64,000 bases of DNA from Octopus sinensis (GCF_006345805.1 NC_043004.1:41168001-41232000); one strand, 5' to 3'. Shown: positions 1 to 57,293, numbered from the stretch's first letter. Made by a program: numbers and translations. Notes: generated by a model from the letters alone, not told the origin.

Positions 1-69
1 TTCCTTCAGCGGTGGCTCAACAGGTGTTTTTGGACAGCAGTCTCCTAACGCCACTCCAGGTTTTGCTAA
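1..69 (+). CDS. NUP214: FG-repeat nucleoporin (Nup214-like) coding exon, 5' end outside window or uncertain
   Basis: Frame from base 2 reads SFSGGSTGVFGQQSPNATPGFA; ends at phase-2 donor AA|GTAAGT (70-75) and splices in frame to 954. Confidence 0.8.
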
Positions 70-108
70 GTAAGTACAGACCTTTATGTATGTCATTGTA
101 TATATTAG

Positions 109-288
109 TGTGGCACATAAAAAGCACCTACTATACTCTCGGAGTGGTTGGCGTTAGGAAGGGCATCCAGCTGTAGAAACACTGCCAAATCAAGATTGGA
201 GCCTGGTGCAACCATCTGGTTCGCCAGCCCTCAGTCAAAATCGTCCAACCCATGCTTGCATGGAAAGCGGACGTTAAACGATGATGAT
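109..288 (+). mobile_element. SINE-like family D (GAT-tailed), in Nup214 intron
   Basis: ggcacataaaaagcacc...ggttggcgttaggaagggcatccagc...gacgttaaacgatgatgat; more than 10 copies in the window. Confidence 0.85.
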
Positions 289-953
289 TTGTGTTTGCCA
301 TCATTATTTAATGTCTGCTTTCCTTTCTCGCAGAAGTTAATGGTTTGACAAGAGCTGGCAAGTAAGAAAGATTGCACCAAGCTCTCTCTGCTTTCGTGCA
401 TGGCTTCTACAGCTGGATGCTCTTCTTAATATCAACTACTTTGCAGATTGTTTGTGTGTGTATAAATCCCTTCCAAGTGGTAGTGTATTGTAAGGATGGT
501 TTTATGAGCAGCTGATCCCAGCCCTAAATGTTAATAAAATGCTCATCAGATTTTACATTGCTTCTGTTGCTTGGTGTTGAGTTGTTCCTACCCTCTTTGC
601 AAAATCCATACCTGCTAAAGAGGTTCTGTGCTTTTTTTTTAACACTTTACATCTATAATGGATACTATCTCGAGATAAACATTGCAGTTTTGTGGCTTTC
701 TACATCGTATCCATGTTAAATAAGATATGCTGAATACTATCAGTCATATTTATTTTATCAACCTTGAAAGCACTGTAAAAGTTATGGGCACTGTCCCTTC
801 CTTCTGACAAAGCAATACAAAATATTGTACAGAGCATTTAGTCTGGTGCAGTACTGTTCCTATCAACTCGTTGTCTTAACCCAGACCACTATTAAACAAA
901 TTTTTGTTCTATAATCATGTATAATTCATTCATTTATTTATTTGTGTATTCAG

Positions 954-1096
954 TTTTGCACAGAGCAGCAGTCCGACATTTGGCAGTTTAGCACAGACTT
1001 CTCCAGTCCAAGGTTTCAATGAAGCACCTAGCCCTCCGAATACTGGTTTCGGTGGATTTGCTTCAGGTTCTGCATTTGGAGGCGGAAGTAGTGGAG
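954..1096 (+). CDS. NUP214: Nup214-like FG exon
   Basis: Acceptor ttcag at 949-953, donor G|GTAAAA at 1097; reads (N)FAQSSSPTFGSLAQTSPVQGFNEAPSPPNTGFGGFASGSAFGGGSSG. The PTFGSLAQ block resembles the Nup214 C-terminal APTFGSLSQ. Confidence 0.85.
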
Positions 1097-1110
1097 GTAA
1101 AAGTTTCCGT

Positions 1111-1697
1111 TTAACCCATTTGCATTCACATTACTCTGTCAAATATATGCCTTTTTATTCACATTGTTTTGAACTAATCATGCATTATCTTGTAACATAG
1201 CGATTTTAATGATGTGATTGTTTATTTTTAGAATAACATAGTAGACAGGTGTGATTTTTGTTTTTCTTTTTTATTTCCCACAAGGGGACAACATAGATAA
1301 GGGCCAATACAATCTGATTGGGGTCAGATGGACGGATGAATATAACATAAAGATGACATTAAAAATTCACAAAAGTATAAATAAATCGAATGATAGGACA
1401 GTCCGGAAGACGTTACGGATGGAGTGAGAAGGCGGGTTCAATTCGGACCCCACGAGCCCCGCCTCACCACTGATACCTGAGATATGCCCTGCATCGCATT
1501 CATGAGGTTACATTCACTCGCAACATCCGTGCTACATTCTTCCATCGATTTTCAAACATTTTCACAGTCAGGCATTTCCTTTCCAGCCCTTATCTTATTG
1601 TAGACAGGTGTGAGAGGCTAGGATCTAGCTGGTTTGAACGACAAAACAAGTAGAAAATTTGGGCTGGGTATGGCCTGTTTAAATGCTAAAGGATTAA
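1111..1697. mobile_element. TTAA-bounded MITE family F (piggyBac-like ends), interrupted by a LINE fragment
   Basis: Ends ttaaccc(a/t)tt(t)gcatt ... atgctaaagg(a/g)ttaa; internal sequence shared with copies at 1960, 2239, 33900, 37324, 40263 and 58092. Confidence 0.7.
1255..1599 (-). mobile_element. 5'-truncated Tx1/L1-like LINE 3' end
   Basis: 14-bp TSD gtagacaggtgtga (1241-1254 / 1600-1613); minus strand reads GLERKCLTVKMFENRWKNVARMLRVNVTS* then a 3' UTR ending ccccttgtgggaaataaaaaa. Confidence 0.7.
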
Positions 1698-1959
1698 GGC
1701 TTGTAGTTTCCTCCCTGGGTAATTAACTGATGACACCAGCTCTAGGTCTTCCTTGTCCCTTGCCTGACTGAAAAAGTTGCCTCTACTCTATGTGGTCTCC
1801 ATTTGTTCAAGGCAAGCATGTCCATAAGGGTGAATAAAGACAATAAGTGTGATGGTGGGGAAACGCACATAAGAGCAAAGGATTGGTAGCAGTGGAAGTA
1901 ATAGAGGACAGTAATGATGCTGTCCCTCAACCCTGCTTGAAGTAGTACCCAAATGTTCT

Positions 1960-2181
1960 TTAACCTTTTAGTATTCAATTTGATCTGTTAAATGTATTCC
2001 TTATTTATTCACATTGTTTTGAATTGCCCATTGCTTTTAAGGTTTTGATGACGTGGTAGTTTATTTTTAGAATGACATTGTAGGGTAAGTGTGAGAGGCC
2101 AGATTTGACCAGTTTGATTTGAACATAAAGCAGGTAGAAGATTTTGACCAGATATAGCTGGTTTAAATGCTAAAGAATTAA
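1960..2181. mobile_element. MITE family F
   Basis: TTAA at both ends; body similar to the 1111 copy. Confidence 0.7.
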
Positions 2182-2238
2182 ATCACCCCTTTTAAAAAAA
2201 AATGCACACACCCAAGGATAAATTGAACAGTGTGTTTC

Positions 2239-2447
2239 TTAACCCATTACCATTCAGATTACTCTAACGTAATACTTATCTGTTCACATTGTTTTGAATT
2301 AGTCCTGCATTATCTTGTATCTCTGAGATTTCAGTCCTGCCTCTTACATTGTAGGATAAATATGAGAGGCTGGATCTGGCCAGTTTGAACATAAAATGAG
2401 AAGAATATTTGCATTGGATATGGCCAGTTTAAATACTAAAGGGTTAA
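2239..2447. mobile_element. MITE family F
   Basis: ttaacccattaccattcag ... aatactaaagggttaa. Confidence 0.7.
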
Positions 2448-2597
2448 TATACTACTTTTGAAAACAAGGTTATGTTCCCGAAAAGCCTTTAATTATAGAT
2501 TTATTTATTCATTGCCAAAAATGACTACCACCATAGGAAAATACTATTTAGTATCATCCATGCGCCAACTGCAATAGAAACTTACTACACAAGCATG

Positions 2598-2997: not shown

Positions 2998-3022
2998 GTT
3001 TTGGTTCTGCACCAGCATTTGG
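2998..3022 (+). CDS. NUP214: Nup214-like 25-nt FG microexon
   Basis: Long T-rich tract then aag acceptor (2995-2997); reads (G)FGSAPAF(G); donor GG|GTAAGT at 3023. Phases 1 and 2 match the flanking exons. Confidence 0.8.
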
Positions 3023-4858: not shown

Positions 4859-4892
4859 GCATTCTGCTTCTTTCACTGATTACCGATCCTGA
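4859..4892 (+). CDS. NUP214: Nup214-like terminal coding exon
   Basis: Strong polypyrimidine tract and ttgcag acceptor ending 4858; phase-2 join gives (G)HSASFTDYRS* with TGA at 4890-4892. The F-x-x-aromatic-RS ending resembles vertebrate Nup214 (FGGWRS). Confidence 0.8.
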
Positions 4893-5415
4893 ATGGTTGG
4901 AAGCAAAGAAACCATTTAAAAGACTAGTTTATCACCATTTTGCTGGTTCTTTGGCAAAAGAAAATTCTTCCAGACAAACACATTCTTTTACATGTATATA
5001 TTAATATACATATATATGTCTCTCTCACACACTCCATTTATCATACCTGTTGTACACTAACTATAGCCAAAGCCTCCATCAGTCACATTTAAATTCCTGT
5101 GTCTAATTAGCTTTGTTATATTAAAACGCTTTTTTTCTTCTCTCAAACAGACCTTTATGATGATGATAATGATGGTGGTAGTGTTTGTGCTCTGGTGTTG
5201 TATAGGCAGTTGGATGAGGTTGAGTAAAGAAACGGAGTTAAATGACAAAACAATGCGGAACAAAGAGATGGGTTTCTCTCCATTTATTATTTCTAGGAAT
5301 TGGATTGGACACAGAACATTATGAACCGGTTTCTGCATTACCATTTTTTTGTACATATTTTTTTTCTTTTAATTTGCTAAAAACAGACTGAACAATTGAA
5401 AGACTTTTTTTTTTA

Positions 5416-5421
5416 AATAAA
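5416..5421 (+). terminator. candidate polyadenylation signal of the Nup214-like gene
   Basis: AATAAA about 520 nt after the stop; other AATAAA copies lie near 5850, so the site is not unique. Confidence 0.3.
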
Positions 5422-6197
5422 TGATTGTATGTCAACATACAAACTTTCTTATGTTGACATAGCAAATTTCCAAGACTGTAAACATTGTTTTCACTTTTTC
5501 ATGTATTTGTGTATATATATATATGTATGGTATGTATGTATAGAGCAGAACTCCACAACCTATTTTCATATGCGGTACACCTATATTCTTTTCAAAATTC
5601 GGTGGCACACCTGAACTAGAAATATAACTAAAAGTATGGGAGGAAAAAATTATATTCAGGTTTTACTGTGGCACACCAGTGTGCCATGGCATGCCGTTGT
5701 GCAGCACTGGTATAGAGCCAACAGATGGGATCCAGAGGTTCTCAATATAGAAAACACTTTGTAGTGCTCAAATGATTTGAACTTGTCTATGGGTAAACAG
5801 TGGCTATAAGAGGAATCCTGGTGAGTAGATATGGAAACAATGATGCAAATAAATAAATAAAACTGCTTGGGTTTGATGTTAAAAAAAATATGTAAGTATA
5901 CATATAAATAGAGAGAAAGCAAAGACTGAAAATTTTCAGACAATGAATATTCATATATAAATATATATTCGTATATAAACAGAACAAACTTTCACAGAAT
6001 ACAAATGACACTAAAAATTAAAGGAGAGAGGGGTATGGTATTACAAATCTGACAGCTGTTTCTGGGGGCTCGGAGTTCCTTCACAATGTTGGCAGATGTA
6101 GCTCACTAGAATATGCAACCAGTAATGGAAGCAAATAATAAACACTGGATAAATTGAGTCTCGGTGTAGAAAAAAAAATTCTGACCATATATGTATA

Positions 6198-6582
6198 CAG
6201 GAGTGGCTGTGTGGTAAGTAGCTTGCTAACCAACCACATTGTTCCGGGTTCAGTCCCACTGCGTGGCATCTTGGGCAAGTGTCTTCTGCTATAGCCCCGG
6301 GCTGACCAATGCCTTGTGAATGGATTTGGTAGACGGAAACTGAAAGAGGCCTGTCGTATATATGTATATATATGTGTGTGGGGGGGGTGTCTGTGTTTGT
6401 CCCCCTAGCATTGCTTGACAACCGATGCTGGTGTGTTTACGTCCCCATCACTTAGCGGTTCGGCATAAGAGACGGATAGAATAAGTACTGGGCTTACAAA
6501 GAATAAGTCCCGGGGTCGATTTGCTCGACTAAAAGCGGTGCTCCAGCATGGCCGCAGTCAAATGACTGAAACGAGTAAAAGT
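6198..6582 (+). mobile_element. tRNA-derived SINE family A (CORE-like centre, internal microsatellite)
   Basis: A box (tggctgtgtggtaag), B box (ggttcagtccc), ccttgggcaagtgtctt core, central (TA/TG)n, tail gcagtcaaatgactgaaac(a/g)agtaaaag; about 15 copies in the window. Confidence 0.88.
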
Positions 6583-6613
6583 GTACACACGCACACACAC
6601 ACACACACACACA

Positions 6614-6871
6614 TCACGTGACTAACCACACCATCAGATGTTGTTACACATTGCTGGTCACAATGCGTTTGCATTGTTTTTGCCCTCGAATGACGCCACC
6701 CCGCTGGCTAAGCAAGCAGGCCAACAGAAGAAAGAGTACATCAGGGATCACCACCCCCTGCTGGAGCATCGTGCAGCTTTTAGGTGTTTTCGCTCAATAA
6801 ACACACAACGCCCGGCCTGGGAATCGAAACCGCGAGTCTGCTGCCCTAACCACTGGGCCATTGCACCTCCA
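6614..6871 (-). mobile_element. tRNA-derived SINE family B
   Basis: Minus strand ggaggtgcaatggcccagtggttagggcag...ggtttcgattcccagg; same family at 26176, 32790 and 56326. Confidence 0.85.
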
Positions 6872-7370
6872 TATATATATACACCACACATATATATATA
6901 TATACATACACACACACATATATATATATATACACACACACATATATATATATATACACACACACATATATATATATATACACACACACTATATATATAT
7001 ATACACACACATATATATATAATATACACACACACATATATATATATATACACACACACATATATATATATATACAACACACACATTATATATATATACA
7101 CACACACACATATATATATATACATATACACACACACATATATATATATATATACATATACACACACACATGTATATATATATACATATACACACACACA
7201 TGTATATATATATACATATACACACACACACATATATATATATATACACACACATATATACATATATATATACACACACATATATACATACATATATATA
7301 TACACATATACATACACATATATACACACATACCTATATATATACATACATACATACACATATATACATG
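6872..7370. repeat. compound (TA)n/(CA)n microsatellite
   Basis: About 500 bp of alternating TA/CA runs; source of the spurious YIYTH/YVCV ORFs. Confidence 0.95.
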
Positions 7371-7914
7371 GAGGTGGAGATTTGATGATAAGCCATGGCA
7401 AACGATAACAGAAGTTACTAGCTCCATTTTTGAGGAGAGAGTGCATTAGGGTTCAGTAGAGGAAAGATAGAATGGTAGACGTATTAGATGTCAGCATCAT
7501 CCAGACTCTAGATATTAAGAATGGGAGGGAGGGGGTTATGATGGTATTAAAGAGGTTATAAAAGACAATGCATGGCCAACAGACATTAAAGGTGATGATG
7601 AATACACTTCTTAAATTAAAGCCCCAACAACAGCGAGTGTGATGCAACTAATGTTGAGGGGAGATTTAAGGATCACCTGGTTATAATGGTGCTAGAAACA
7701 TGCAAATAATACAAAAATTTTTTTTAATTTGTAGTCTTAGTGAAAGTGTATGTTCATTGAGAATAAATGAATTAAAAAAAAATTTAAGCACCTTCTGCTA
7801 GTGGTTTCTCATGAAAAATAAAATTCTTGTCTAATATTAAAGCTTAAGAACTATCTAGCTCAATAAGATTCTAATTCTACTCCCTGCAAAACTACAAATA
7901 TAACAGTTCTTACT

Positions 7915-8148
7915 CATCATCATCATCATTTAGCGTCCGCTTTCCATGCTAGCATGGGTTGGACGGTTCAACTGGGTCTGTGAAGCTGGAAGGCTTCGTC
8001 AGGCCCAGTCAGATCTGGCAGTGTTTCTATGGCTGGATGCCCTTCCTAACGCCAACCACTCCGTGAGTGTAGTGGGTGCTTTTTACGTGCCACCTGCACA
8101 GGTGCCAGACAGAGCTGGCAAACGGCCATGAACGGATGGTGCTTTTAC
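7915..8148 (-). mobile_element. SINE-like family D
   Basis: (cat)n tttagcgtccgctttccatgctagcatggg...ggatgcccttcctaacgccaacc. Confidence 0.85.
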
Positions 8149-8496
8149 TATAGACAAAAACGTTCTCATTACCCTGAACCATAAGCAACATCCTGGGTAT
8201 ATCCAACTGCCTCTCCCATACCTTATACATACATATACACACACATATACATGGCAAATGAAGAGGACTGCTTTACCAGTAAGCTACCAGGTGTAAAACA
8301 TTTTATTATCTGTCGTCATCATCGTTTAACGTCTGCTTTCCATGCTTGCAAGGATTGGGCGATTTGACTGAGGACTGGCGAACCAAATGTGTGTATATAT
8401 ATATACATATAACAATTTAACAAATAAAACATACATACATACATATATGTACATACCTACATCTATATGTATATATACATGCATATATATATATAT

Positions 8497-8830
8497 GAGT
8501 ACAGGACACCACAAAAAAACGTAGAACACGAGAAACGAAAACAAAAACAAACTAGGAAACGGACTTTTTTTAACAACGAAAAAACAGTAAAAGACAAACA
8601 ATACAAGGAATATTCCCCTTCATCAGCTGCCCCTGGTTCGACTCAATGTGTGTTTCGAAGGTAAGGGCAGAACATGATCCGGCCGAAGCAGTCCTTCCTG
8701 CAAAATGAATTAAATAAAATTCTTTTGCAGAGGGGTAAAACAAGGAAAGAAAAAAAGTGACCAGAACATAACGTAAAAGCAATACAAATAAAAATACAGT
8801 ACACATAAAGAATAAAAACAGGACAAGGAA
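8497..8830 (-). mobile_element. unclassified repeat fragment (family H, possibly a Penelope terminal region)
   Basis: Shares caggacaccacaaaaaaac...gaaacgaaaac...caaggaa(t/a)attccccttc(a/t)tcag with 10560-10708; family identity is inferred. Confidence 0.5.
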
Positions 8831-9039
8831 ACTAACATTGAGGGCTTTTTAAGCCCAGACGGTGGAAAAATTCGTTGGAATGCAATTCAGAAGATCGACT
8901 TGCTAGAGACAGAAGTCGATGTTGACTTGGTGTATATGTATGTATGTATATATATATATGTGTATATATATATGTGTGTGTGTATATATATGTATATGTG
9001 TGTATATATATGTGTGTATATGTATGTATATATATATGT

Positions 9040-10398
9040 CTATATATGTATTGCATTCAGAAACTGCAGATACAGTGTTTACGTCCATTATCGAACCTCT
9101 GGCAGCATATTTAATATCAGGCACCTTGCTGCAAAAACAAAGGTATTTACCTCTATCATAAGAGACGTTTTGTATGCAGATGATTGTGAGCTAGTAGCAC
9201 ACACAGAGATTGATATGCAACACATTTTGAATGCATTCTCTGATGCTTGCACTGCTTTAGGATTGACAGTCAATCTCAAGAAAACTTGTCATGGTAAGAA
9301 AACCTGCCCCTGGTAAGCAGTATAGTGTACCAAATATCTAGGTGTATGGTAAATGACTTGATGTAGTTGATCAGTTTGTCTATCTGGGAAGCACTATTAA
9401 TAGATATAGCAATTTGGATGATGAAATTCCATATAGAATTAGGAAAGCAAGTGTTGCTTTCGGAAGGCTAGAAAAGCGCCTCTGGAGTCGGCGAGACATA
9501 TGCAGAAAGACAAAGATAAAAGTGAACAAGGCATGTGTGCTCCCTTCTCTTCTCTATGCTTGTGAGACGTGGGTCACATATCGATACCACCTTAAACAAC
9601 TGGAACATTTCCATCAGATGTGCCTCAGACGGATCTATGGCATTAAGTGGAAGGATCGCATCAGTGATCTTGAAATATTGGAAGGCTCTCGGTGTGAAAG
9701 TATAGAAGCTCTTGTGCAAAGATGGAGTGGTCAGGATGAAGGATTCAAGGATGCCAAAACAACTCTTTTATGGAGAGTTAGCTAAAGGAGAACGACTTCC
9801 ACATAAACCAAAAAAGAGGTATAAGGACTTGCTGAAAGCATCCTTAAGAGATGCTTGCATCTCTACTGACACATGGGAAGGCATAGCTATTGATCGTAGC
9901 AGGTGGAGAAGGATTGTGCACGAGGGGACAGCCACTTTTGAGAAATCTCGAGTTGCACATGAGAAAGTAAGGAGGGATGTCAGGAAGGGCATCGCTGTTA
10001 CACTTCCAGATGAGAAGGGTCTTCCTTTGATGCTGACATGCAATGTCTGTGCAAGACCCTGCCTCAGTAATGCTGGACTCAAGAGTCATCTTCATAGTCA
10101 TAAAGCGAGACGGATGAGTGACAACCTGGCCACTGGTGGTGGTGTAACACACCATAGTAATCGTATCTGTCGGGCATGTGGAAGAGAGTGTAATTCGGCA
10201 GGAAGACTTAAACGACATGCAAAGGTACATGAAGCCCAGTTACAACTACAGCCGGCTATTACCGGTAAAGGTATTAGTTGCCAATTCTGTACAAGACATT
10301 GTAGATCTTTAGCTGGGCTAAAAAGTCACATTCAGTCACAGCACCAGTAACAGTTAAGCTTCGTGCAATGGCCATACTCGATAACAAGGGGGCAGCCA
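9040..10398 (+). mobile_element. RTE-clade (BovB-like) LINE, 5'-truncated, with three C-terminal C2H2-like fingers
   Basis: YADD RT motif (DVLYADDCELVAH), RIRKASVAFGRL, LLYACETW, RMPKQLFYGEL, then CxxC..H..H three times; broken by frameshifts and stops. Confidence 0.92.
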
Positions 10399-10559
10399 TA
10401 ATATATATATGTATGTATATATATATATATATATATATATAAGTACAATCTTACTTAGAAATGGATGCGTGCGTTCCGTCATGTAAGAAATTAATAGATA
10501 AATAAAACATATGCATATATACATACATATATGTACGTACCTACCTCTACATGCATATA

Positions 10560-46591: not shown

Positions 46592-46660
<69 letters not shown>
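46592..46660. repeat. pure (TA)n microsatellite
   Basis: Direct observation. Confidence 0.95.
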
Positions 46661-47239: not shown

Positions 47240-47665
47240 TTTTACTTGTTTCAGTCATTAGACTGTGGCCATGCTGGTGCACTGATTTGAAGTACTTTTA
47301 GCTGAGTGAATCAATCCCAGGACATATTTTTTAAAGCTTTGTGCTTATTCGAACAATCTTTTTGCCAAACTACTGACTTATGGGGACATAAGTACACCAG
47401 TACCATTTGTCAAGTAGTGGTGGGGGACAAACACAGGCACAAAACACACACAGATCCATGCACACGTGCACACACACACATGCACCCCACCACACACACA
47501 CACACACACACATGCAACAGGTGTCTTTCAGTTTCTGTCTACTAAATCCGCTCACAAGGCTTTTGGTTGGCCCAAGGTTATAGAAGCAGACACTTGCCCA
47601 AGGTTCCACAAAGCAGGATTGAACCCCAAACTATGCTATTGGGAAACAAGCTTCTTACCACACGA
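47240..47665 (-). mobile_element. SINE family A, diverged (further partial copies at 46690-46925 + and 47060-47235 -)
   Basis: Recognisable tail, microsatellite and core. Confidence 0.75.
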
Positions 47666-47897
47666 TATCTACTGAAACAGATTCCACTTCTTGTATGATG
47701 ACAACATTGGCACAGTTCATATATTCCACTGAAGAAGGCCCTAGTATGACCTTGGAACAAGGTCATATAGCAATAGCTGAGAGATGCAACATTCCCAGAG
47801 GTATATCCAGGTTCTAAAGTTTAGTGGGAGCAAGCACATAAAAAAAAGGTGCCAAACAATTTTTGACTCATTTTCGTTATAATATGCAAAATATTTC

Positions 47898-48322
47898 GGA
47901 TCTTTTCGGTTTTGAATGGCAGTTTTTTCTAGCAGTGTCATATGAAATTGTCACCCATAATTATGATCCTAGTATCGATCTATTGCATTTCAATCTATTT
48001 TAGGGTTAGGGTTAGGGGTGGGGGGAAGGGTATTTTTTTTTCTTCACAAATGTAAATAAACCCAATCTGTTTCTTAAACGAGGGACATATTCATACGGCA
48101 CAGAATGTTTTTTTACCTCAATACACATCATTGATTGGTTGAAATTGCAGAAATTGAAGAAAAAAAAAAAACAACAAATATCTTACAAACCATAGAATTT
48201 TCTCAATAAAGCCAAGAGAAAAAAGATGTTTTATAAACACATTCTACCAGAATACGAAGTTTAAAATTTTTTAGTTACCTAGAAAATTATGTTAAAAACT
48301 GCCATTCAAACGGAAAAGATCC
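47898..48322. mobile_element. MITE family M
   Basis: TIRs plus perfect 8-bp TSD aatatttc (47890-47897 / 48323-48330). Confidence 0.93.
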
Positions 48323-48632
48323 AATATTTCATTAGTTATAAAATATGTAATTGTGCTCTACATACATTAATTTCATGTTTTGGTAAAAATGTCATTATGA
48401 ATGAAACTTATAACTACTAATATAGGTAACTAAAGAGTTAAAAAAGATTTTTGAAAAGGAGCCAATTTAGATAAATGTATTCCTGGGAAACAATCGCTCC
48501 CCTTGCTCCTCTATTAGCTATGCCCACTGACCAGTTCCCAAACTTTTGCCTCTTGGAGAAACCATGAAATGCATTCTATGTCTCAGAGAGCCCTTACATC
48601 AAAAATATTATATACCTTTATTAATCTTCTTT

Positions 48633-48946
48633 CATCATCATCATCATCGTTTAACATCCGTTTTCCGTGCTAGCACAGGTTGGACAGTTCGACCGGGGTC
48701 TGGGAAGCCAGGAGGCTGCACCAGGCTCCAGTCTGATCTGGCAGTGTTTCTACAGCTGGATGCCCTTCCTAACGCCAACCACTCCGTGAGTGTAGTGGGT
48801 GCTTTTTAAGTGCCACCGGCACAGGAGCCAGAGTAGGCTGGCAGCGGCCACTTTCGGATGGTGCTTTTTACGTCCCACTGGCACAGGAGCCAGAGCAGGC
48901 TGGCAGCGGCCACTTTCGGATGGTGCTTTTTACGTGCCACTGGCAC
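48633..48946 (-). mobile_element. SINE-like family D with internal tandem units
   Basis: (cat)n...ggatggtgctttttacgt repeated. Confidence 0.87.
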
Positions 48947-49154
48947 ACTCTTTTAAAAATATAAATTTCTTTAGAGATTAACTAGCTCATAAAACTATCT
49001 TTGAAAGGTTTCCCAGTATTCTACATCAATGTTCCATGAGAAATCACAGAGAAATTAAAGAAATTTCATTTTAAGCAAAACCTTGATTTAATCAAATACC
49101 ACAATTCCCTAATAAGCAGTCTTCTGTGTTGAAGTCCATTGTATAAACATATAT

Positions 49155-49361
49155 GAGAAGGTGGTAAAGTTCCTGGCTTTAAGGGTATCGTGAAAGGCCT
49201 GGTTGGAGGCCCAACCTTCTGAAGTTCTTTTACAGGGTTTAGAAAAACTGAAGGACTGCTGCAATAAGTGGGTGAATCTGAGAGGGGAATATGTTGAATA
49301 AAATCATACCCAATCCTCCTGTATTTTCTTTTACCCAAAGCCAGGAACTTTTCAGCACCCC

Positions 49362-49362
<1 letters not shown>
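49155..49362 (+). mobile_element. short mariner derivative (transposase C-terminus between TIR-like ends)
   Basis: aaagttcctggcttt ... aaagccaggaacttt inverted ends; GLEKLKDCCNKWVNLRGEYVE* resembles mariner C-termini. Confidence 0.7.
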
Positions 49363-49403
<41 letters not shown>

Positions 49404-49830
49404 TTGTATGTATGTATGTATGGATGCATGTTTGTATGTATGTATGTATGTATGTTTGTATGCATGTATGCATGTTTGTATGTATGTATGTATGTATGCA
49501 TGTTTGTATGTATGTATGTATGTATGTATGTATGTATGCATGTTTGTATGCATGTTTGTATGTATGTATGTATGTATGTATGCATGCATGTACGTACGTA
49601 CGTTTGTATGTATGTATGTATGTATGTATGTATGTATGTATGTGTGTATGTATGTATGCATGCGTATGTATGTGTGTATGTATGTATGTATGTATGCATA
49701 TTTGTATGTATGTATGTATGCATGTTTGTATGTATGTATGTATATATGTATGTATGTATGTATGTATGCATGTGTATGTATGTATGTGTGTGTGTATGTA
49801 TGTATGTAAGTGTATGTGTGTGTGTGTTTG
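49363..49830. repeat. (TG)n/(TATG)n compound microsatellite
   Basis: About 470 bp; source of the MYVC ORFs. Confidence 0.95.
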
Positions 49831-50644
49831 TCTCCCCAGCTATTTGACAATCAGTGTTGCTTTGTCTATGTCCCTGTATCTTGATAGTTCAGCAAAACAG
49901 GTCAATATAATAAGCACCATACTTGAAATTAAGTACTGGGTCTAATCTGTTTGCCCAAACCCTCCAAGATCGTGTTCCAGTATGGCCACAGTCTAATACT
50001 GAAACATGTAAAAGATAAAGGATAAAGATATGACATGTGGGAGATTTAGTGTAACTAGGACTACATTTGTCAATGTTTCATTCCTTTTTTTAAAAAAAAG
50101 CTAGAGCGTGATATGCTGTTGATTTGGCTGCTATTTCTAGCATGTGGAGGCTTTGTTATTTGCTTATTTGGCCTTTTTCTCAGTCACAGTTTATGGAAGA
50201 TTACCTTTTTCAACATGCTCTTTCATTCTGAATGTGACAGGGTGTGATATGATAGAGATTTGGCTGCTGCTTCTAGCACGTTGAGCAACCATGAACAAAC
50301 TTTCTCAAGACTCCAATTTCCAAAGTATAATTTTCATATCTGGCTTTGATTATAGAGCTCAATGTAGTTCATATGTTTAGAATGCAGAAAACGAAAACAA
50401 AATAACTTAATCACCACCATCTTTAGAAAAATCCTGTGGAAATATGAGAGTATGATATAAATTTACATAATTACAGCCACATGTTTGGAAAGAGGAGAAA
50501 GTGAGGAGGGGGAGGGGGAGGAAAAGAATTAAGAAGCAGAAGAGATGAGAATAGTAAGGTAGATGATAAAGAGAATGTGTAAATGTCCTCTAGTCTCTCA
50601 ACCCAAATTCATCTGGTACTCATCTAAAAATAATAATAATAATA

Positions 50645-50862
50645 ATAATCCTTTCTACTATAGACGCAAGATCTGAAATTTTTGGAGAGAGGAATAGTCA
50701 ATTACATCGACTCCAGTGTTTCACTGGTACTTAATTTATCGACCCGGAAAGAATGAAAGGCAAAGCTGACCTCAGCGGAATTTGAACTCAGAACGTAGCA
50801 ACGGATGAAAAACTGCTAAGCATTCTGTTCGATGTGTTAACAATTCTGCTGGCTCACCGCCT
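50645..50862 (-). mobile_element. SINE family C (second diverged copy at 50890-51095)
   Basis: Reverse copy. Confidence 0.75.
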
Positions 50863-51099
50863 TTTTAACAACAATAATAATAAGCCTTTCAACTAAAGGC
50901 ACAATGCCTGATTCTTTTCAGAAGGGGTTAAGTCAATTACATCGACTCCAGGATTTTGCTGTCACTTAATCTATCAACCCCGAAAGGATGAAAGTCAACG
51001 TCAGCCTTGGTGGAATTTGAACTCAAAACATGAAAACTGATGAAATGCCGTTAAGCATTTTGTCCAGCGTGGTGGCAATTCTGTTGGCTCACTGCTTTT

Positions 51100-51152
<53 letters not shown>

Positions 51153-51229
51153 AATAACAACAACAAGAGTACTCAGAGAGTACAAACTTCTGCCAACACA
51201 ACACCCCTCTCAATAATTAACCAGAGATG

Positions 51230-52260
51230 ATTATTAAAATGAGAATATATGAAAAAAATGGCAAGACTTTCACCCGTTCCCCACCAAAAAAAACACCCTG
51301 TTGGTCATTTTGTTTCTCAGGTGTTCTTTTTGTTTTCATGAATTTTGTGGTTGTGAATATGTTTGTAAAAATTGGTTGTCTTGTGATGAAGATGCTGATG
51401 TTTGTGTTTTGTTTTTAAAGTGGAGTGGTGATAGATTTTGCTTTTACTGTCATATCTTAGGGCTTTCGATTTGGGCTGGTCTCTGTTTCATAATCAGTTT
51501 TTCTCTTATCTCCAACAAAGGCCTTTTGGTGTGATATCAATGAGGACTTTGCTTTTGTGAGGCCTGAGTTGGGAGAAGGAGGTAGACTCGAGGTAATAGA
51601 TTTGTCCCCACCTTGAAGAGTTGTTAGCAATGGTGGAGAGCTTCATGCTTCTCCACTGTGGAGCAAAAGACTTTGAGGTGATTTGTATTCCCATGCACAC
51701 TAAACACTTCTGTTTTTACCCCTCCATAGAAACTGGCATCTGTTCACATTCCCCGAAACAGATAAAATTAGGAATGTAATTTAGTTCCTCTGGAGAAACT
51801 AGAATCTGGAATTCCATAAGAATTCCAGTCCTGTTGAGTTGTGGAGTGGACTTCACCTCCACAATCTCCCCATGTTCTTCCAGAATGGCTAAAACCTTCG
51901 CCAGATCACAGTAATCCAGCATGTTCTTGACTTGAATTCAAATTAACCTTTTATCCATGTAATAGGGAATCATTAAAAAAGCCTGGTTATAGTAGCCATT
52001 ACAAGTTATAGTAACCATTCTCTTGGCTTCTTGCTCACTGCTGCATACAGCAGCAACCATCCCACATTGTTTACCTTTCAGTATGTGTAGCACTGAGTGC
52101 CACACATCATCGAGGCAATTTTCAGTCTCTGCTGGAGAAAGAAATTTAAACTTCTTCTCCGTGCGAGAAACACATTTATAAACAATTGTTTGTCTTTCGG
52201 AGGTTTTTATCTCCTCCTCACTAAGGCACATAACACCTGGTTTCATAATGTCATTCTTGT
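51230..52260 (-). mobile_element. probable Tx1/L1-like LINE ORF1 remnant
   Basis: Adjacent frames read ...IPYYMDKRLI*IQVKNML...LEEHGEIVEV...MPVSMEGRKQKCLVC, an RRM-like region followed by V.EGR..C..C typical of L1/Tx1 ORF1; degraded. Confidence 0.55.
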
Positions 52261-52282
52261 ATTTCGGTGCCTTATTTTAAAG

Positions 52283-52682
52283 TCATCATCATCATCATCA
52301 TCGTTTAACGTCCGCTTTCCATGCAAGCATGAGTTGGACGGTTCAACTGGGGTCTGGGAAGCCCGAAGGCTGCACCAGGCCCCAGTCAGATCTGGCAGTG
52401 TTTCTACAGCTGGATGCCCTTCCTAATGCCAACCACTCCGTGAGTGTAGTGGATGCTTTTTACGTGCCATCGACACAGGTGCCAGACGAGGCCACACTCG
52501 GATGGTGCTTTTTACGTGCCACCAGCACGGAGGCCAGGCAAGGCTGGCAAACGGCCACGATCGGATGGTGTTTGTTACGTGCCACCGGCACGGAGGCCAG
52601 GTGATGCGGCGCTGGCTAAGGCCACGTTTGGATGGTTCTCTTACGTGCCACTGGCACTGGTATCACAACTACAAATTCCATT
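52283..52682 (-). mobile_element. SINE-like family D, long form with tandem units
   Basis: (cat)n head on +, three to four ggatggtg..tttacgtgccac units. Confidence 0.87.
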
Positions 52683-53214
52683 GATGTTGATCGATTTTGA
52701 TTTTTAGAAAAAAATAGTCCAATTGCTAATGGTTTTAGAAAAGGAATTAACTTTGTTGAGGTTCATTGTGTTATTATTGCTGCTATTGTTGTTGTTGTTG
52801 TTGTTTTCAATCTTGTTCATGTTACTTTTCTCGCTTTTGATCTTGTTGTTAATGTTGTCATTGATACAGTTGCTATTATTGTTTTTGTTTCTGCTGTTTG
52901 TAGTGGTGGTGGTGCTGCTGCTGGTATTGTTTACATTGTTGCTGCTGGTACTTTTGCACTTCTTACTCTCGTTGTAGCAACAAGAGGAAATTATATTTCT
53001 CTTTGGCAAGAAACTAATCTCACCTTCAGCTGCATTTGCTTTCAGAGTTTCAACTGAGTCAGCAGATTGCTGCTCTTGGTCAATTATTATTACTATTTTT
53101 CTGTCATCCAACATTTTTCAAAATTGGAAAAATGAATAAAATCTTGTCTTCACAAAAAATGCAAAACAATTATTACACCTTCAAAAAGTGGGGTGCAATT
53201 ACACAAAATGTTAC

Positions 53215-53445
53215 CTATTTCTTTATTACCCACAAGGGGCTAAACACAGAGGGGACAAACAAGGACAGACATAGGTATTAAGTCGATCAGATCGACCCCA
53301 GTGTGTAACTGGTACTTAATTTATCGACCCCGAAAGGATGAAAGGCAAAGTCGACCTCGGCGGAATTTGAACTCACAACGTAACGCAGACGAAATACGGC
53401 TACGCATTTCGCCCGGCATGCTAACGTTTCTGCCAGCTCGCCGCC
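53215..53445 (-). mobile_element. SINE family C, full length
   Basis: Near-consensus reverse copy. Confidence 0.88.
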
Positions 53446-53905
53446 TTTTGCAAAAGTTACCACACAAAATGTTACCACCACAATCAAGCAAAATACTCGT
53501 AAAATAGAATTTTGAATGACCGGGCTGCAACCAGCTAAAATGCTTGATTAAACACTTACAAGTTATAGAATTCCAACTTGTATGACTTCACAGGCTGACA
53601 GCCATAATGATAATAATAACAACAACAATAATGGTTTCAAATTTCGACACAAGGCCTGAAATTATGGGGAAGGGACCAAGTCGATATCATTGATCCCAGT
53701 ACTTGATTGGTACTTATTTTATTGATCCCAGAAGGATGAAAAGCAAATTCAGAACGTACATCGACCCCAGTGTTTCACTGGTACTTACATCAACTCCTTT
53801 GTGTTTTACTGGTATTTAATTCATCACTCCCCAAAAGATGAAGTGCAAAGCCAACGATGGTGGAATTTGAATTCAGAACGTAAATTCTGCAAGTTCACTG
53901 CCTTT

Positions 53906-53947
<42 letters not shown>

Positions 53948-54740
53948 TTTACTATAGGCACAAGGCCTGAAATTTGGGATGAGGGGACTAGTCGATTATA
54001 TTAACCCCAGTATGCAACTGGTACTTATTTATCGACCCCGAAAGGATGAAAGGCAAAGTCGACCTCGGCGGAATTTGAACTCACAACGTAACGCAGACGA
54101 AATACGGCTACGCATTTCGCCCGGCATGCTAACGTTTCTGCCAGCTCGCCGCCTTTTGCAAAAGTTACCACACAAAATGTTACCACCACAATCAAGCAAA
54201 ATACTCGTAAAATAGAATTTTGAATGACCGGGCTGCAACCAGCTAAAATGCTTGATTAAACACTTACAAGTTATAGAATTCCAACTTGTATGACTTCACA
54301 GGCTGACAGCCATAATGATAATAATAACAACAACAATAATGGTTTCAAATTTCGACACAAGGCCTGAAATTATGGGGAAGGGACCAAGTCGATATCATTG
54401 ATCCCAGTACTTGATTGGTACTTATTTTATTGATCCCAGAAGGATGAAAAGCAAATTCAGAACGTACATCGACCCCAGTGTTTCACTGGTACTTACATCA
54501 ACTCCTTTGTGTTTTACTGGTATTTAATTCATCACTCCCCAAAAGATGAAGTGCAAAGCCAACGATGGTGGAATTTGAATTCAGAACGTAAATTCTGCAA
54601 GTTCACTGCCTTTTTAATAATAATAATAATAATATAATAATAATAATAATAATACTTTTTACTATAGGCACAAGGCCTGAAATTTGGGATGAGGGGACTA
54701 GTCGATTATATTAACCCCAGTATGCAACTGGTACTTATTT
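53310..54740. repeat. about 708-bp near-exact tandem duplication
   Basis: ORFs 53321-53530 and 54029-54238 are identical (offset 708); the whole block repeats, differing mainly in an (aat)n run. Confidence 0.93.
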
Positions 54741-55346
54741 TATCAACCCTGAAAGGAAGGGCAAAAATCACCCTTGGTGGTATTTGAACTCAGAATGTAA
54801 AGAAGGACGAAATTCTGCTTAGCATTTTCTCTGGTGCAGTAATAATTCTTCTAGTTTGCTGTCTTAATAATAATAATAATAATAACAATGGTTTCAATTT
54901 TGGCACTAGGCCAGCAATTTCAGGGAAGGGAGTAAGTTGATTATGTCAACCCCAGTATTTGACTGATACTTATTTTATCAACCCCAGTAACATTGAAACT
55001 CAGAACATAAAGTCAGAAGAAATGCCGCTAATCATTTTTTCTTCCAGTGCAGACATTTGAAAGAATTCTTGGGTAAGCAGAACCTTGTTTTAAAAAAAAT
55101 GGCCTGCTATTAATCTTGTACAGGTTTTGTACATTTTATACTTTCGATCTGTAATCTATTTTCTTGACCAACAATTGCAATTAAAGAGAAAGTTGCTAGG
55201 ATAATACAATTATAAGTTGCACATCAAATTTAGGCGTTTAACATTTAGTTGATACATTAAAGGTCCTATGAAATTCTCTCTTTATTCAACTTTCACATAT
55301 TTTCACACCCTTCTTCTTTTCCACAATTCTCCCGCACTGTATTTGC

Positions 55347-55556
55347 TCTTTTACTCTTTTACTTGTTTCAGTCATTTGACTGTGGCCATGCTGGAGCACC
55401 GCCTTTAGTCGAGCAAATCGACCCCAGGACTTATTCTTTGTAAGCCTAGTACTTATTCTGTCGGTCTCTTTTGCCGAACTGCTAAGTTACAGTGACATAA
55501 ACACACCAGCATCGGTTGTCAAGCGATGTTGGGTGGGGGAACAAACATATACACAC

Positions 55557-55595
<39 letters not shown>

Positions 55596-55650
55596 CACAT
55601 ATGTGACGGGCTTCTTTCATTTTTCATCTTCCAAATTCACTCACAAGATT
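55347..55650 (-). mobile_element. SINE family A, 5'-truncated
   Basis: Tail, microsatellite and part of the core in reverse. Confidence 0.82.
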
Positions 55651-55847
55651 TTTGGTCGATTTTTGCTATTTACTTATTTTAATTATTTTCTTTATTTTTT
55701 AATCATTTCTAAGTATTTTAAATAATATTTTCAAATTTTAAATTTTTATCTAACATAGTTAACAGAGAATTCATCTCGTTATATCATCTATTTCATAATT
55801 TGTAAATTTACTTATACAGTTTTAGAATAATTTATTATTCATTTAAA

Positions 55848-56032
55848 TCATCATCATCATCATTTAACATCCGCTTTCCATGCTAGCATAGGTTGGATGG
55901 TTTTGACTGAAGGCTGGCAAACCAGATGGCTGCACTAGGCTCCAGTCTTGATCTGGCAGAGTTTCTACAGCTGGATGCCCTTCCTAATGCCAACCACTCC
56001 GTGAGTGTAGTGGGTGCTTTTTACATGCGACC
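55848..56032 (-). mobile_element. SINE-like family D
   Basis: Standard D body. Confidence 0.85.
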
Positions 56033-56325
56033 TGACAAATAGATCAACTGAACTAGTTTCAATACCTGACAAATGGGATCAACTGGACTAGTTTCAACAT
56101 TTGTTGAGATTATATAAACATCAACTGCCCTTCCCTAGCTGTCCATAGTCATACTGTAATTGAAGCCACTATTGTTAAAGGTTTTATTGCATGGGGTACA
56201 TCAATTTACATAAATGAGACATTTTTAGCAACTATTTTGCTTAATGAATTACTGTTAGCAATGTTTGTTTTTAATGCTATGATGTACTTAAAGAGTAAAC
56301 TTTTTTAGCCAATTTATGTATAAAT

Positions 56326-56632
56326 TGTGGAGGCGCAATGGCCCAGTGGTCAGGACAGCGGACTCGCGGTCGGAGGATCGTGGTTTCGATTCCCAGGCCG
56401 GGCGTTGTGTGTGTTTATTGAGCGCAAATACCTAAAGGTCCATGAGGCTCCGGCAGATGGTGGTGGTGACCTCTGTTATACTCTTTCGCCCCAACTTTCT
56501 CTCACTCTTTCTTCCTGTTTCTTGGGTAACGCTGTGATGGATTGACGTCCCGTCTAGCTGGGGAGAACACATACGCCACAGAAACTGGGAAACCGAGCCC
56601 ATGAGCCTGGCTAGGCTTGAAAAGGGTGCATA
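56326..56632 (+). mobile_element. SINE family B
   Basis: ggaggcgcaatggcccagtggtcaggacagcggactcgcgg...ggtttcgattcccagg. Confidence 0.85.
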
Positions 56633-56814
56633 AATATAAAAACATGAATAAATTAATTAAGCTTAATTAAAAACAGAGGGCATCATAAATGACTGACTTT
56701 TTTTTCATTTTATACAGTTTTATTGTGAGCAAAAAGGAATCAACTGTATTAACAACTGACTACCCTTCTCTAACAAGCCATAATAAGATTATATTTATAC
56801 CCAGTAAAGCACTG

Positions 56815-57015
56815 AGCCAGCAGAATCACTAGCATGTCAGGTAAAATGCTTAGCAACATTTTGTTTGTCTTAATGTTCTGAGTTCAAATTCCACCGAGGG
56901 TCAATTTTGCCTTTCATCCTTTTGGGGCTGAAAAAATAAGAATCAGTCATGTACTGGGGATTGATGTAACTGACTAGCCCCTTCCCCTAAAATTTCAGGC
57001 CGATACTAGAAAGGA
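56815..57015 (+). mobile_element. SINE family C, diverged
   Basis: gagttcaaattcc...ttttgcctttcatcctttgggg. Confidence 0.65.
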
Positions 57016-57179
57016 TTATATTTATACCAAGTATTATTAAGAGCTTTATTCAATCAAGACACAGATTTCTATAAATCAGACTCGTTTTAGATATTAATTG
57101 TTATAAAACAATTAATATTGCGATGTATAATTTTAAAACAAATTCTTTCTTATAATGATGATAATGTAGACATACTTAC

Positions 57180-57293
57180 AATCCTTCATTACTGTAGGTA
57201 TTCCGAAATATCATTTTGGTACAAGCCTGGATCCATCCAATTTTCCATGACTCTGAACGCATACTTGGAGCCATTTGGACTGTAGCACTAGCT
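57180..57293 (-). CDS. FAM78: FAM78-family protein, internal 114-nt exon
   Basis: Acceptor ttttccttgcag, donor TT|GTAAGT; reads ASATVQMAPSMRSESWKIGWIQACTKMIFRNTYSNEG, matching FAM78 ASA..V..P....W.VGWIQAC..M.F.NTY. The phase-2 join to 23721 gives EG-F-TSWE in frame. Confidence 0.93.

Follow-up and report, generated by a model that had tools for sequence, protein, structure and literature searches.

Convergent Nup214 and FAM78 genes in Octopus sinensis, and the conserved neighbour at the other end of FAM78

Among conserved ancient gene pairs, 5'-5' pairs whose spacers are short are enriched (Irimia et al. 2012, PMC3514665). In the cephalopod Euprymna, 275 metazoan microsynteny blocks are retained (Schmidbaur et al. 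2022, PMC9023564). At the locus closest to the one studied here, the gene order LAMC3, NUP214, FAM78A, PLPP7 has been reported for cattle (PMC12171144; the coordinates are given in PMC8391191). The protein FAM78, still uncharacterised, has bacterial homologues and a confident all-beta fold with no relative among solved structures. In mouse muscle, Fam78a and Ppapdc3/Plpp7 are down-regulated jointly by exercise. For the octopus, it was originally predicted that a Nup214-like gene and a FAM78 gene stand tail-to-tail, that this linkage may be ancient, and that it may be actively constrained.

The window analysed in this study is a stretch of 64,000 nucleotides of Octopus sinensis (GCF_006345805.1 NC_043004.1:41168001-41232000). 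Nup214 contributes its last three coding exons on the plus strand and FAM78 its last two on the minus strand; the genes stand tail-to-tail, with 18.2 kb between the two stop codons. Both are ordinary, real genes whose 3' ends face each other. The features of the window are as follows (a slash marks a splice boundary).

1..953, plus strand: intron that precedes the third-from-last coding exon of the Nup214-like gene
954..1096 (or start at 964), plus strand: Nup214 FG-repeat exon, third from last, encoding (F)AQSSSPTFGSLAQTSPVQGFNEAPSPPNTGFGGFASGSAFGGGSSG-G
2998..3022, plus strand: Nup214 micro-exon of 25 nt, aag/GTTTTGGTTCTGCACCAGCATTTGG/gtaagt, encoding G-FGSAPAF-G, phase 1 in and phase 2 out
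4859..4892, plus strand: Nup214 terminal coding exon, (G)HSASFTDYRS, with TGA at 4890-4892; needs phase 2
4893..23141, no strand: 3'-3' interval of 18.2 kb, with two unmapped 3' UTRs and transposon remains
8816-9313, plus strand: LINE-type reverse-transcriptase fragment in the interval (Pfam RVT_1 match)
9706-10347: zinc-finger LINE tail in the interval
12802-13353, plus strand: LINE-type reverse-transcriptase fragment in the interval (Pfam RVT_1 match)
13923-14501, minus strand: LINE-type reverse-transcriptase fragment in the interval (Pfam RVT_1 match)
23142..23721, minus strand: FAM78 last coding exon, residues 187-378 of P0001, TSWEFQEL...KHDSKL (tblastn, 99.5% identity)
23722..57179, minus strand: FAM78 phase-2 intron of 33,458 bp, packed with transposon remains
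24085-24522, plus strand: RT/PHD fragment in this intron
43621-44022, minus strand: mariner transposase fragment in this intron
57180..57293, minus strand: FAM78 penultimate coding exon, residues 148-186, RASATVQMAPSMRSESWKIGWIQACTKMIFRNTYSNEG-F
57294..64000, minus strand: part of the FAM78 intron that precedes the penultimate coding exon; residues 1-147 are encoded by one or more exons outside the window

SINE-like copies and microsatellites are also present in the 3'-3' interval, and about 32% of it recurs elsewhere in the window. Rfam and tRNA searches of the interval gave zero matches, and the reference annotation calls no further gene within 10 kb of octopus FAM78. The earlier description of the interval as only transposon debris is fair, when the two 3' UTRs are allowed for.

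The spliced FAM78 peptide of the window differs by one residue from 'protein FAM78B isoform X1 [Octopus bimaculoides]' (P0001, 378 aa), and its stop codon is TAA at 23144-23142 on the minus strand; the gene thus ends where it was predicted to end. It has full-length similarity to annotated FAM78 proteins, 55-65% identity to FAM78 of other molluscs, and the invariant motifs GW.Q, SDxDG..PWYG, R.Q.F..WL and P.AN..Q, together with a cephalopod-specific, low-confidence N-terminal extension. A tblastn search of the whole window with residues 1-147 of P0001 gave no match. Since these residues are encoded outside the window and the annotated gene spans 105 kb, position 57293 is an internal exon boundary and not the start of the gene. 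The intron of 33,458 bp splits a Phe codon (TT/T), which confirms the phase 2 predicted for the EG-F/TSWE junction. Many SINE-like and microsatellite copies lie within this intron, at least 45% of which recurs elsewhere in the window, and there are transposon ORFs inside it.

The FG-repeat exon of the plus-strand gene has its acceptor at 952-953 or 962-963 and the donor GAG/GTAAAA, and no FG-type coding segment was found before 954 in any plus-strand frame. This exon ends in phase 1, while the terminal exon needs phase 2. The micro-exon, which ranked first of 135 phase-compatible candidate exons and has 100% FG-type composition, reconciles the two; the end of the gene on the plus strand at 4892 is therefore right, with three exons, canonical splice sites and compatible phases. 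The 3' end of the gene encodes a C-terminal FG-repeat domain; the spliced tail reads ...SSSPTFGSLAQTSPVQGFNEAPSPPNTGFGGFASGSAFGGGSSGGFGSAPAFGHSASFTDYRS-stop, and the predicted C-terminus is ...GGFGSAPAFGHSASFTDYRS.

The N-terminal beta-propeller and the central coiled coil of Nup214 fall outside the window, and the identity of the gene was judged from its 3' end. The octopus tail aligned to Xenopus Nup214 with z = 5.8 (0/2000 shuffles reached the score) and to residues 2008-2090 of human NUP214 with z = 3.1 (11/2000). A search with the spliced peptides, proposed earlier as the way to confirm orthology, was decisive for FAM78, but the octopus FG exons gave no significant Nup214 match by word-indexed search, by phmmer (PDB) or by composition-adjusted BLASTP (E = 0.4). 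Such a failure is expected for low-complexity FG sequence. It could also be explained if the plus-strand segments belonged to another FG nucleoporin or were chance open frames, and the location of the remainder of the gene beyond the window would leave room for this view. The splice sites and phases of the three exons, however, argue against it, and so does the comparison with Lottia gigantea.

In Lottia, a previously unannotated, orthologous Nup214 3' end was located near FAM78. It is collinear with residues 1867-2090 of PDB-verified human NUP214 at z = 13 (Smith-Waterman score 343 against 156 +/- 14 for shuffles, with 0/500 shuffles as high), and the alignment covers the GLFSGLGGxPS..AN.N.F motif. 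The three-exon end structure is common to Lottia and octopus. The FG exons share an identical SPTFGSLAQ; the Lottia counterpart of the micro-exon has 34 nt, the same phases and the same ending, TTTGG/gtaagt; and the terminal exon, (G)TSSSFSSYR-stop in Lottia, has the same phase-2 acceptor and the common pattern SxSFxxYR. The C-terminus of vertebrate Nup214 is ...GWRS. Nup214 has 2090 aa in human and 2037 aa in Xenopus, and the gene at the same position in Argonauta hians encodes 2106 aa. C-terminal FG repeats and a neighbour of this size would fit the size and domain order of Nup214 and not those of Nup98, Nup62, Nup153 or Nup358. We therefore consider another origin of the FG segments very improbable; the names Nup214-like and FAM78 both stand.

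The neighbours of FAM78 were compared in 13 species, with flanks of 10 kb around the gene, a range that would miss a looser linkage. In Argonauta, the 2106-aa gene, a presumed Nup214 by its size and position, is convergent with FAM78 at a distance of 5.4 kb. In Lottia, the convergent Nup214 and FAM78 are 7.3 kb apart, and a GH10 gene lies between them. The tail-to-tail orientation is thus conserved in the octopus window, Argonauta and Lottia. Linkage of NUP214 to FAM78 is also seen in goose, and the order matches that of vertebrates, where NUP214 and FAM78A are taken to be convergent, as in the human annotation. In nine of the ten non-cephalopod invertebrates, no Nup214-like gene or FG exon was found within 10 kb downstream of FAM78. 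These nine, from seven phyla, are scallop, chiton, Bugula, amphioxus, Saccoglossus, Lingula, Capitella, Owenia and Priapulus, so that a lack of the linkage in other spiralians and invertebrate deuterostomes, named in the original prediction as a sign of coincidence, is seen at this distance in most of the other taxa. The pairing, with the genes 5-36 kb apart, is found in two phyla only among those sampled. The claim of an ancient linkage is partly supported, by Argonauta, Lottia and the cattle order, and not by the nine other bilaterians at this range.

The arrangement is not private to the octopus of the window: Argonauta shares it, and so does Lottia, where one gene has been inserted. It therefore probably goes back at least to the divergence of cephalopods and patellogastropods. 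Our preferred reading, which we hold to be somewhat probable, is that the arrangement was inherited and persists passively as what is left of an old neighbourhood. The mollusc and vertebrate arrangements would then share a common descent. With nine of ten invertebrates lacking Nup214 within 10 kb, this descent needs many independent breaks, or distances beyond the view of the survey.

It is worth considering that the tail-to-tail position of Nup214 and FAM78 arose separately in vertebrates and in an ancestor of molluscs. If the two genes belonged to the same ancestral linkage group, scrambling of gene order would give a few dozen chance adjacencies between any two distant genomes. The nine species without Nup214 within 10 kb, from amphioxus to chiton, point the same way, as does the fact that the 3' neighbour of FAM78 is different in each of them while the 5' neighbour is stable. 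In addition, the enrichment seen in conserved ancient pairs does not extend to 3'-3' pairs (PMC3514665). On the other hand, the same gene recurs on the same side and in the same orientation in octopods and Lottia, and vertebrates share the gene and the side, their orientation being taken from the human annotation. Flanks of 10 kb would also miss a Nup214 gene one or two genes further out, as the inserted gene in Lottia illustrates. Finally, the gene on the other side of FAM78, PLPP6/7, is demonstrably ancestral, which means that the region as a whole is old. Coincidence is thus unlikely, although it deserves more weight than any other alternative to passive inheritance.

The original prediction went further and proposed shared regulatory elements, or enhancers in the very large FAM78 intron. 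The position of this intron is indeed conserved: an intron of phase 2 directly before (T/S)SWE was found in nine of the ten invertebrates checked (Lottia, scallop, chiton, amphioxus, Saccoglossus, Lingula, Capitella, Owenia and Priapulus) and is missing only in Bugula. We take it to sit at the vertebrate junction quoted in that prediction (GM-SSWE). Its length is another matter. In Lottia the homologous intron has 255 bp, scallop and Lingula lie with it in the range of 255-437 bp, and amphioxus has about 17 kb. An intron that is so short in three of these animals and absent in Bugula cannot be an ancient reservoir of enhancers, and the repeated share of the octopus copy likewise gives the enhancer proposal no support.

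Active regulatory constraint, in which shared enhancers, or enhancers of one gene inside the other, forbid breakpoints between Nup214 and FAM78, would account for the survival of the pair both in the heavily rearranged octopod genomes and in vertebrates. However, the nine other bilaterians lack the pair within 10 kb, Lottia tolerates an entire GH10 gene between the two, and the octopus intron and intergenic spacer are mostly transposon remains. Genomic regulatory blocks are anchored by developmental regulators of a kind to which neither Nup214 nor FAM78 belongs. Ancient microsyntenies are, moreover, about equally numerous in cephalopods and scallop (275 vs 216; PMC9023564), so that the survival of one pair in cephalopods is not remarkable. 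Active constraint on the pair thus finds no support, and we regard it as quite improbable. Under passive inheritance, the 3'-3' pair would be free of selective constraint, and its junction would have been broken or stretched in most of the lineages sampled.

The comparison revealed a more stable neighbour at the other end of FAM78. In seven of the ten non-cephalopod invertebrates (Lottia, Ylistrum, Liolophura, Branchiostoma belcheri in two assemblies, Lingula, Capitella and Owenia), a PLPP6/7-type phosphatase gene stands head-to-head with FAM78, with the coding starts 0.5-2.7 kb apart. The pair spans Mollusca (three classes), Annelida (two species), Brachiopoda and Cephalochordata. The phosphatase genes, named PLPP6-like or phospholipid phosphatase 6 in the sources, are mutual homologues with a common intron position. 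PRDX6 flanks PLPP6 in Lingula and Owenia, and PLPP6, FAM78B and PRDX6 are listed together in a window of chicken chr8. In the octopods (octopus and Argonauta), PLPP6/7 was not found within 10 kb of the FAM78 5' end; the junction itself is situated outside the octopus window. FAM78-PLPP6/7 is an ancient conserved head-to-head microsyntenic pair, found in this analysis. The expectation that a conserved neighbour would be a useful clue to FAM78 was therefore correct in that such a neighbour exists, but it is PLPP6/7 at the 5' end and not Nup214. The widely conserved neighbour of this uncharacterised gene is thus a lipid phosphatase gene.

The most likely reading of these arrangements is an old neighbourhood PRDX6 - PLPP6/7 <-> FAM78 -> <- NUP214, of which the octopus would keep a remnant. 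The part that looks constrained would be the head-to-head junction of FAM78 and PLPP6/7, where the spacing of 0.5-2.7 kb could be the signature of a shared bidirectional promoter; the two genes may well share one. A bolder version, in which the four genes formed a block in the bilaterian ancestor and FAM78 is functionally tied to PLPP6/7 through a bidirectional promoter, seems doubtful to us. If it were true, FAM78 would be linked to the handling of polyisoprenoid or lipid phosphates in the ER and at the nuclear envelope, and its place between two nuclear-envelope genes, PLPP7/NET39 and NUP214, would be no accident.

Among described systems, the vertebrate locus of the 9q34 type, NUP214 - FAM78A - PLPP7 (PPAPDC3/NET39), has Nup214 on the same side of FAM78 as the octopus. 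It differs in that octopod FAM78 is without PLPP6/7 in the 10 kb at its 5' end, and in that the octopus gene extends over 105 kb and carries the low-confidence extension particular to cephalopods. Genomic regulatory blocks resemble the octopus locus in having a large intron in one gene beside a conserved neighbour, but the octopus pair contains no developmental regulator, and the intron is tiny in other phyla and filled with transposons here. The metazoan microsynteny blocks of cephalopods (Schmidbaur et al. 2022, PMC9023564) are likewise old linkages that outlast the reorganisation of coleoid genomes; such blocks, unlike the Nup214-FAM78 pair, need several genes common to at least six distant species, and FAM78, Nup214 and PLPP6 do not appear in six supplementary files of that study. 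The main text of the work on ancestral bidirectional-promoter pairs (Irimia et al. 2012, PMC3514665) names neither FAM78-PLPP6/7 nor Nup214-FAM78. The latter differs from that co-regulated class, being 3'-3', 5-36 kb apart and seen in only two phyla, whereas FAM78-PLPP6/7 fits it, with a 5'-5' orientation, a spacing of 0.5-2.7 kb and a distribution over four invertebrate phyla-level groups and vertebrates. The joint regulation of the two genes in mouse muscle also fits this class.

The window carries the AT-rich, repeat-laden sequence of an animal genome. Two exons of the minus strand, when joined, encode a peptide that matched protein FAM78B isoform X1 of Octopus bimaculoides (P0001, 378 aa, used here for FAM78 numbering) with an E-value of 3e-152. 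In tblastn, residues 187-378 of P0001 aligned with 23720-23145 and residues 148-186 with 57295-57179, and residues 1-147 had no match anywhere in the window. Reading of the junctions gave the features below, with exon boundaries and a phase-2 intron in a Phe codon exactly as the original prediction had described them.

57293..57180, minus strand: penultimate FAM78 coding exon in the window; acceptor cag before A, donor TT before gtaagt
23721..23142, minus strand: last FAM78 coding exon; acceptor cag before T, stop codon TAA at 23144-23142
Between these exons, minus strand: phase-2 intron, 33,458 bp long, that splits a Phe codon

The two exons encode residues 148-378. Since residues 1-147 are unmatched in the window and the annotated gene in the reference covers 105 kb, position 57293 must be the boundary of an internal exon, with FAM78 running past 64000. 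The octopus and Argonauta genes each exceed 100 kb, and FAM78 of Argonauta hians is 96% identical to the window peptide. The window peptide differs from P0001 at one residue, K in the window versus M in the reference. At this codon, that of residue 309 in exon 23721-23142, the window reads Lys (GERAKLVS), as does Argonauta, and the reference reads Met (GERAMLVS). Either a polymorphism or a difference between assemblies accounts for this; the change is not A-to-G and hence not of the RNA-editing type.

The 3' end of the putative Nup214 gene lies on the opposite strand.

Open segment in frame 1 ending at 1096, plus strand: FG-rich; polypyrimidine/AG acceptor at 952-953 (alternatively 962-963), strong donor GAG before GTAAAA
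2998-3022, plus strand: micro-exon of 25 nt, GTTTTGGTTCTGCACCAGCATTTGG, preceded by aag and followed by gtaagt; encodes FGSAPAF; best of 135 candidates
Acceptor at 4857-4858, stop codon TGA at 4890-4892, plus strand: terminal segment, translated as (G)HSASFTDYRS

A two-exon end was rejected, because the phase-1 end of exon 954-1096 does not fit exon 4859-4892, which requires phase 2. The micro-exon was sought by enumerating all AG...GT segments between these two exons whose length class fitted and whose frame was open. With it, the predicted mRNA ends in ...GGFGSAPAFGHSASFTDYRS and the spliced C-terminus in ...SSSPTFGSLAQTSPVQGFNEAPSPPNTGFGGFASGSAFGGGSSGGFGSAPAFGHSASFTDYRS-stop. An exon so short would easily be overlooked by gene predictors.

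In Lottia gigantea, the Nup214 3' end was absent from the called genes. It was found by a de novo FG-exon scan, on the strand opposite FAM78.

Lottia locus L001, 18720-20930 and beyond, minus strand: Nup214 3' end; FG exons 20930-19510, stop codon 18722-18720, 7.3 kb from the FAM78 stop
Lottia locus L001, 15083-17780, plus strand: GH10 (glycoside hydrolase family 10) gene between the FAM78 and Nup214 3' ends; the sole annotated downstream gene

The Lottia and octopus ends are built alike: an FG exon ending in phase 1 is followed by a micro-exon and then by a phase-2 terminal mini-exon. The micro-exon is 34 nt in Lottia (L001 about 19077-19044, minus strand) versus 25 nt in the octopus; its phases are conserved, and in both species it ends in the same way (TTTGG before gtaagt). 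The mini-exon reads TSSSFSSYR-stop in Lottia versus HSASFTDYRS-stop in the octopus, and SPTFGSLAQ in the Lottia gene is identical to the octopus exon.

Standard search tools were uninformative on the FG exons because of their low-complexity sequence. The 45-aa octopus FG peptide gave zero candidates in a word-indexed search, phmmer against the PDB returned nothing for either the octopus or the Lottia tail, and composition-adjusted BLASTP of the octopus tail against the human NUP214 tail gave E = 0.4. The FG identity was tested instead by shuffle-controlled Smith-Waterman alignment against PDB-verified Nup214 segments. The human segments were verified in chain 7r5j_V0 (residues 2008-2090 with 136 bits, 1867-2015 with 265 bits), and the Xenopus tail was taken from chain 7tdz_s. 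The octopus tail was collinear with the final ~55 residues of each protein and outscored shuffles that preserve composition (human, z = 3.1, score reached by 11/2000 shuffles; Xenopus, z = 5.8, 0/2000). The Lottia 3' end scored 343 against human NUP214 1867-2090, where shuffles scored 156 +/- 14 (z = 13, 0/500). The alignment includes a non-FG motif, GLFSGLGGQPSAEKANTNVF, that matches the vertebrate (F/L)FSGLG(G/A)KPSQ(D/E)AANKNPF. The Argonauta gene at the same position encodes 2106 aa, and human NUP214 has 2090 aa. The plus-strand gene is almost certainly Nup214, the Lottia 3' end giving the decisive evidence; its propeller and coiled coil would lie outside the window.

Exon structure and the Lottia-anchored identity thus bear out the proposed tail-to-tail arrangement of the two 3' ends. 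The stop codons are 18.2 kb apart, and reverse-transcriptase fragments and a LINE zinc-finger tail lie between them. About 32% of this interval is repeated elsewhere in the window, and it contains no Rfam family or tRNA. The reference annotation calls no other gene in the 10-kb flanks of FAM78.

The original prediction suggested that this adjacency may be ancient and shared with human NUP214-FAM78A, the order and convergent orientation of which we take to be standard annotation. We compared FAM78 orthologue loci with 10-kb flanks in twelve other genomes. A convergent Nup214 was found near FAM78 in two species, Argonauta, where the 2106-aa gene is 5.4 kb from FAM78, and Lottia. The statement that the linkage is absent from all non-cephalopods was rejected, since the FG-exon scan revealed the unannotated Lottia gene. 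The same scan and a permissive tblastn detected no Nup214 in the 10-kb flanks of scallop, chiton, Bugula, amphioxus, Saccoglossus, Lingula, Capitella, Owenia or Priapulus. The annotated FAM78 3' neighbours in these nine species are all different (a kinase, a 204-aa gene, a 7TM receptor, a 434-aa gene, FtsJ, Tim17, etc.). In cattle, the gene order is ...FIBCD1, LAMC3, NUP214, FAM78A, PLPP7 (PMC12171144), with a gap of 36 kb between NUP214 and FAM78A (PMC8391191). A goose SNP has also been annotated to NUP214/FAM78A. Deep Nup214-FAM78 synteny thus has partial support: Argonauta, Lottia and the cattle order favor it, and the nine other invertebrates show no Nup214 within 10 kb.

It is worth considering that the adjacency could be shared by chance between distant genomes. 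By a rough, inferred estimate, if genes were freely scrambled inside linkage groups that hold from several hundred to a thousand of them, a few dozen chance-shared adjacencies would result. On this estimate, we keep coincidence as a less likely, but far from negligible, explanation of a linkage found in Argonauta, Lottia and cattle. An adjacency common to two distant genomes is insufficient by itself to show constraint. Cephalopods retain about as many ancient microsyntenies as the scallop (275 versus 216; PMC9023564), so the survival of one linkage in cephalopods is unsurprising. FAM78, Nup214 and PLPP6 are unmentioned in the supplements of that study (Schmidbaur 2022), and neither the Nup214-FAM78 nor the FAM78-PLPP6/7 linkage was found discussed in any paper.

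Enhancers in the large FAM78 intron had been suggested to constrain the pair. The intron, in phase 2 before (T/S)SWE, is kept in all the bilaterians checked but Bugula, in which the exons have fused. It measures 33.5 kb in the octopus and 17 kb in amphioxus, but 255 bp in Lottia, 418 bp in scallop and 437 bp in Lingula. These small introns contradict the enhancer idea, and active constraint on Nup214-FAM78 is unsupported. The octopus intron is large because transposons accumulated: at least 45% of it is repeated within the window, and RT/PHD and mariner fragments lie inside. It also holds open frames of 70-130 aa, with no Pfam match.

51719-52276, minus strand: open frame
45381-46088, minus strand: open frame
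42132-42660, minus strand: open frame

On inspection, some of these resemble transposases or BED fingers, and the open frames are probably the decayed remains of DNA transposons.

Pfam has no family for FAM78. A profile search gave 563 representative clusters (family members P0137, P0144, P0158, P0168 and P0173). Some of these are full-length homologues from metagenomes that carry signal-peptide-like leaders, and one was contributed by an Abditibacteriaceae MAG; the family thus extends beyond animals. In the AlphaFold2 model of P0001, residues 113-370 form an all-beta core with pLDDT above 90, and residues 1-112 are of low confidence. No extension as long as the latter was seen among the other molluscan FAM78 sequences read. 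Foldseek of the confident model against the PDB gave no convincing match (best E = 1.5e-3, query-normalised TM-scores below 0.2). Conservation of FAM78 reaches from bacteria-like homologues to humans, but it has no known function, and few clues are available besides a conserved neighbour.

Such a neighbour was observed on the other side of the gene, outside the window. A PAP2-family gene lies directly upstream of FAM78 on the opposite strand in Lottia, scallop, chiton, amphioxus (two assemblies), Lingula, Capitella and Owenia (loci L001, L003, L004, L005/L006, L008, L009 and L010, with FAM78 at locus position 10001). This head-to-head arrangement with PLPP6/7 (phospholipid phosphatase) thus occurs in three mollusc classes, two annelids, one brachiopod and amphioxus, with 0.5-2.7 kb between the two coding starts. 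The PAP2 genes are mutual homologues, with 42-54% identity in the catalytic exon, a common intron position and the KxxxxxxRP, PSGH and SRxxxxxHxxxD motifs. In the sources they appear as 'PLPP6-like' or 'phospholipid phosphatase 6'; the amphioxus exon model had no exact database entry match. The flanks in Bugula, Saccoglossus and Priapulus yielded no PLPP6-like sequence, and neither did the window. The counterpart adjoining FAM78A in cattle is PLPP7 (PMC12171144). In two loci, a peroxiredoxin gene lies next to the pair.

Lingula locus L008, 1628-5862, plus strand: peroxiredoxin gene, best match PRDX6
Owenia locus L010, 1-815, plus strand: peroxiredoxin gene

The genes listed for a chicken chromosome-8 candidate region likewise include PLPP6, FAM78B and PRDX6 (PMC9412053). 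These facts suggest a three-gene ancestral cluster, PRDX6-PLPP6-FAM78. In amphioxus, a fibrinogen-domain gene (L005 1-1385, minus strand) adjoins the PLPP6-like gene, and cattle FIBCD1 is three genes from NUP214. This could be a coincidence, such genes being numerous in amphioxus.

In mouse, electrical stimulation places Fam78a and Ppapdc3/Plpp7 in the top ten of down-regulated genes, and the expression of both is also lower with exercise (PMC9731977). The informative conserved neighbour of FAM78 is PLPP6/7, paired with it head-to-head in four invertebrate phyla and also in vertebrates; joint regulation of the two is hinted at in mouse muscle. The expectation that a neighbour would offer a clue to FAM78 holds in this form, but Nup214 is not that neighbour.

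The old neighbourhood was most probably PRDX6, then PLPP6/7 head-to-head with FAM78, then NUP214 convergent with FAM78. The 5'-5' junction of FAM78 and PLPP6/7 would have been held together, plausibly via a shared promoter, and the 3'-3' junction of FAM78 and NUP214 would have been free to break. The latter persists in octopods and vertebrates, persists in Lottia with the GH10 gene inserted, and has been broken or stretched in the other species.

The FAM78-PLPP6/7(-PRDX6) cluster beyond the window is more informative than the Nup214-FAM78 pair. The gain for genome evolution is modest, namely one further old linkage that partly survived the reorganisation of cephalopod genomes. Conserved gene pairs as such are a well-known kind of feature, and ancient conserved pairs are enriched for the short-spacer head-to-head class, which has been attributed to shared promoters (PMC3514665).
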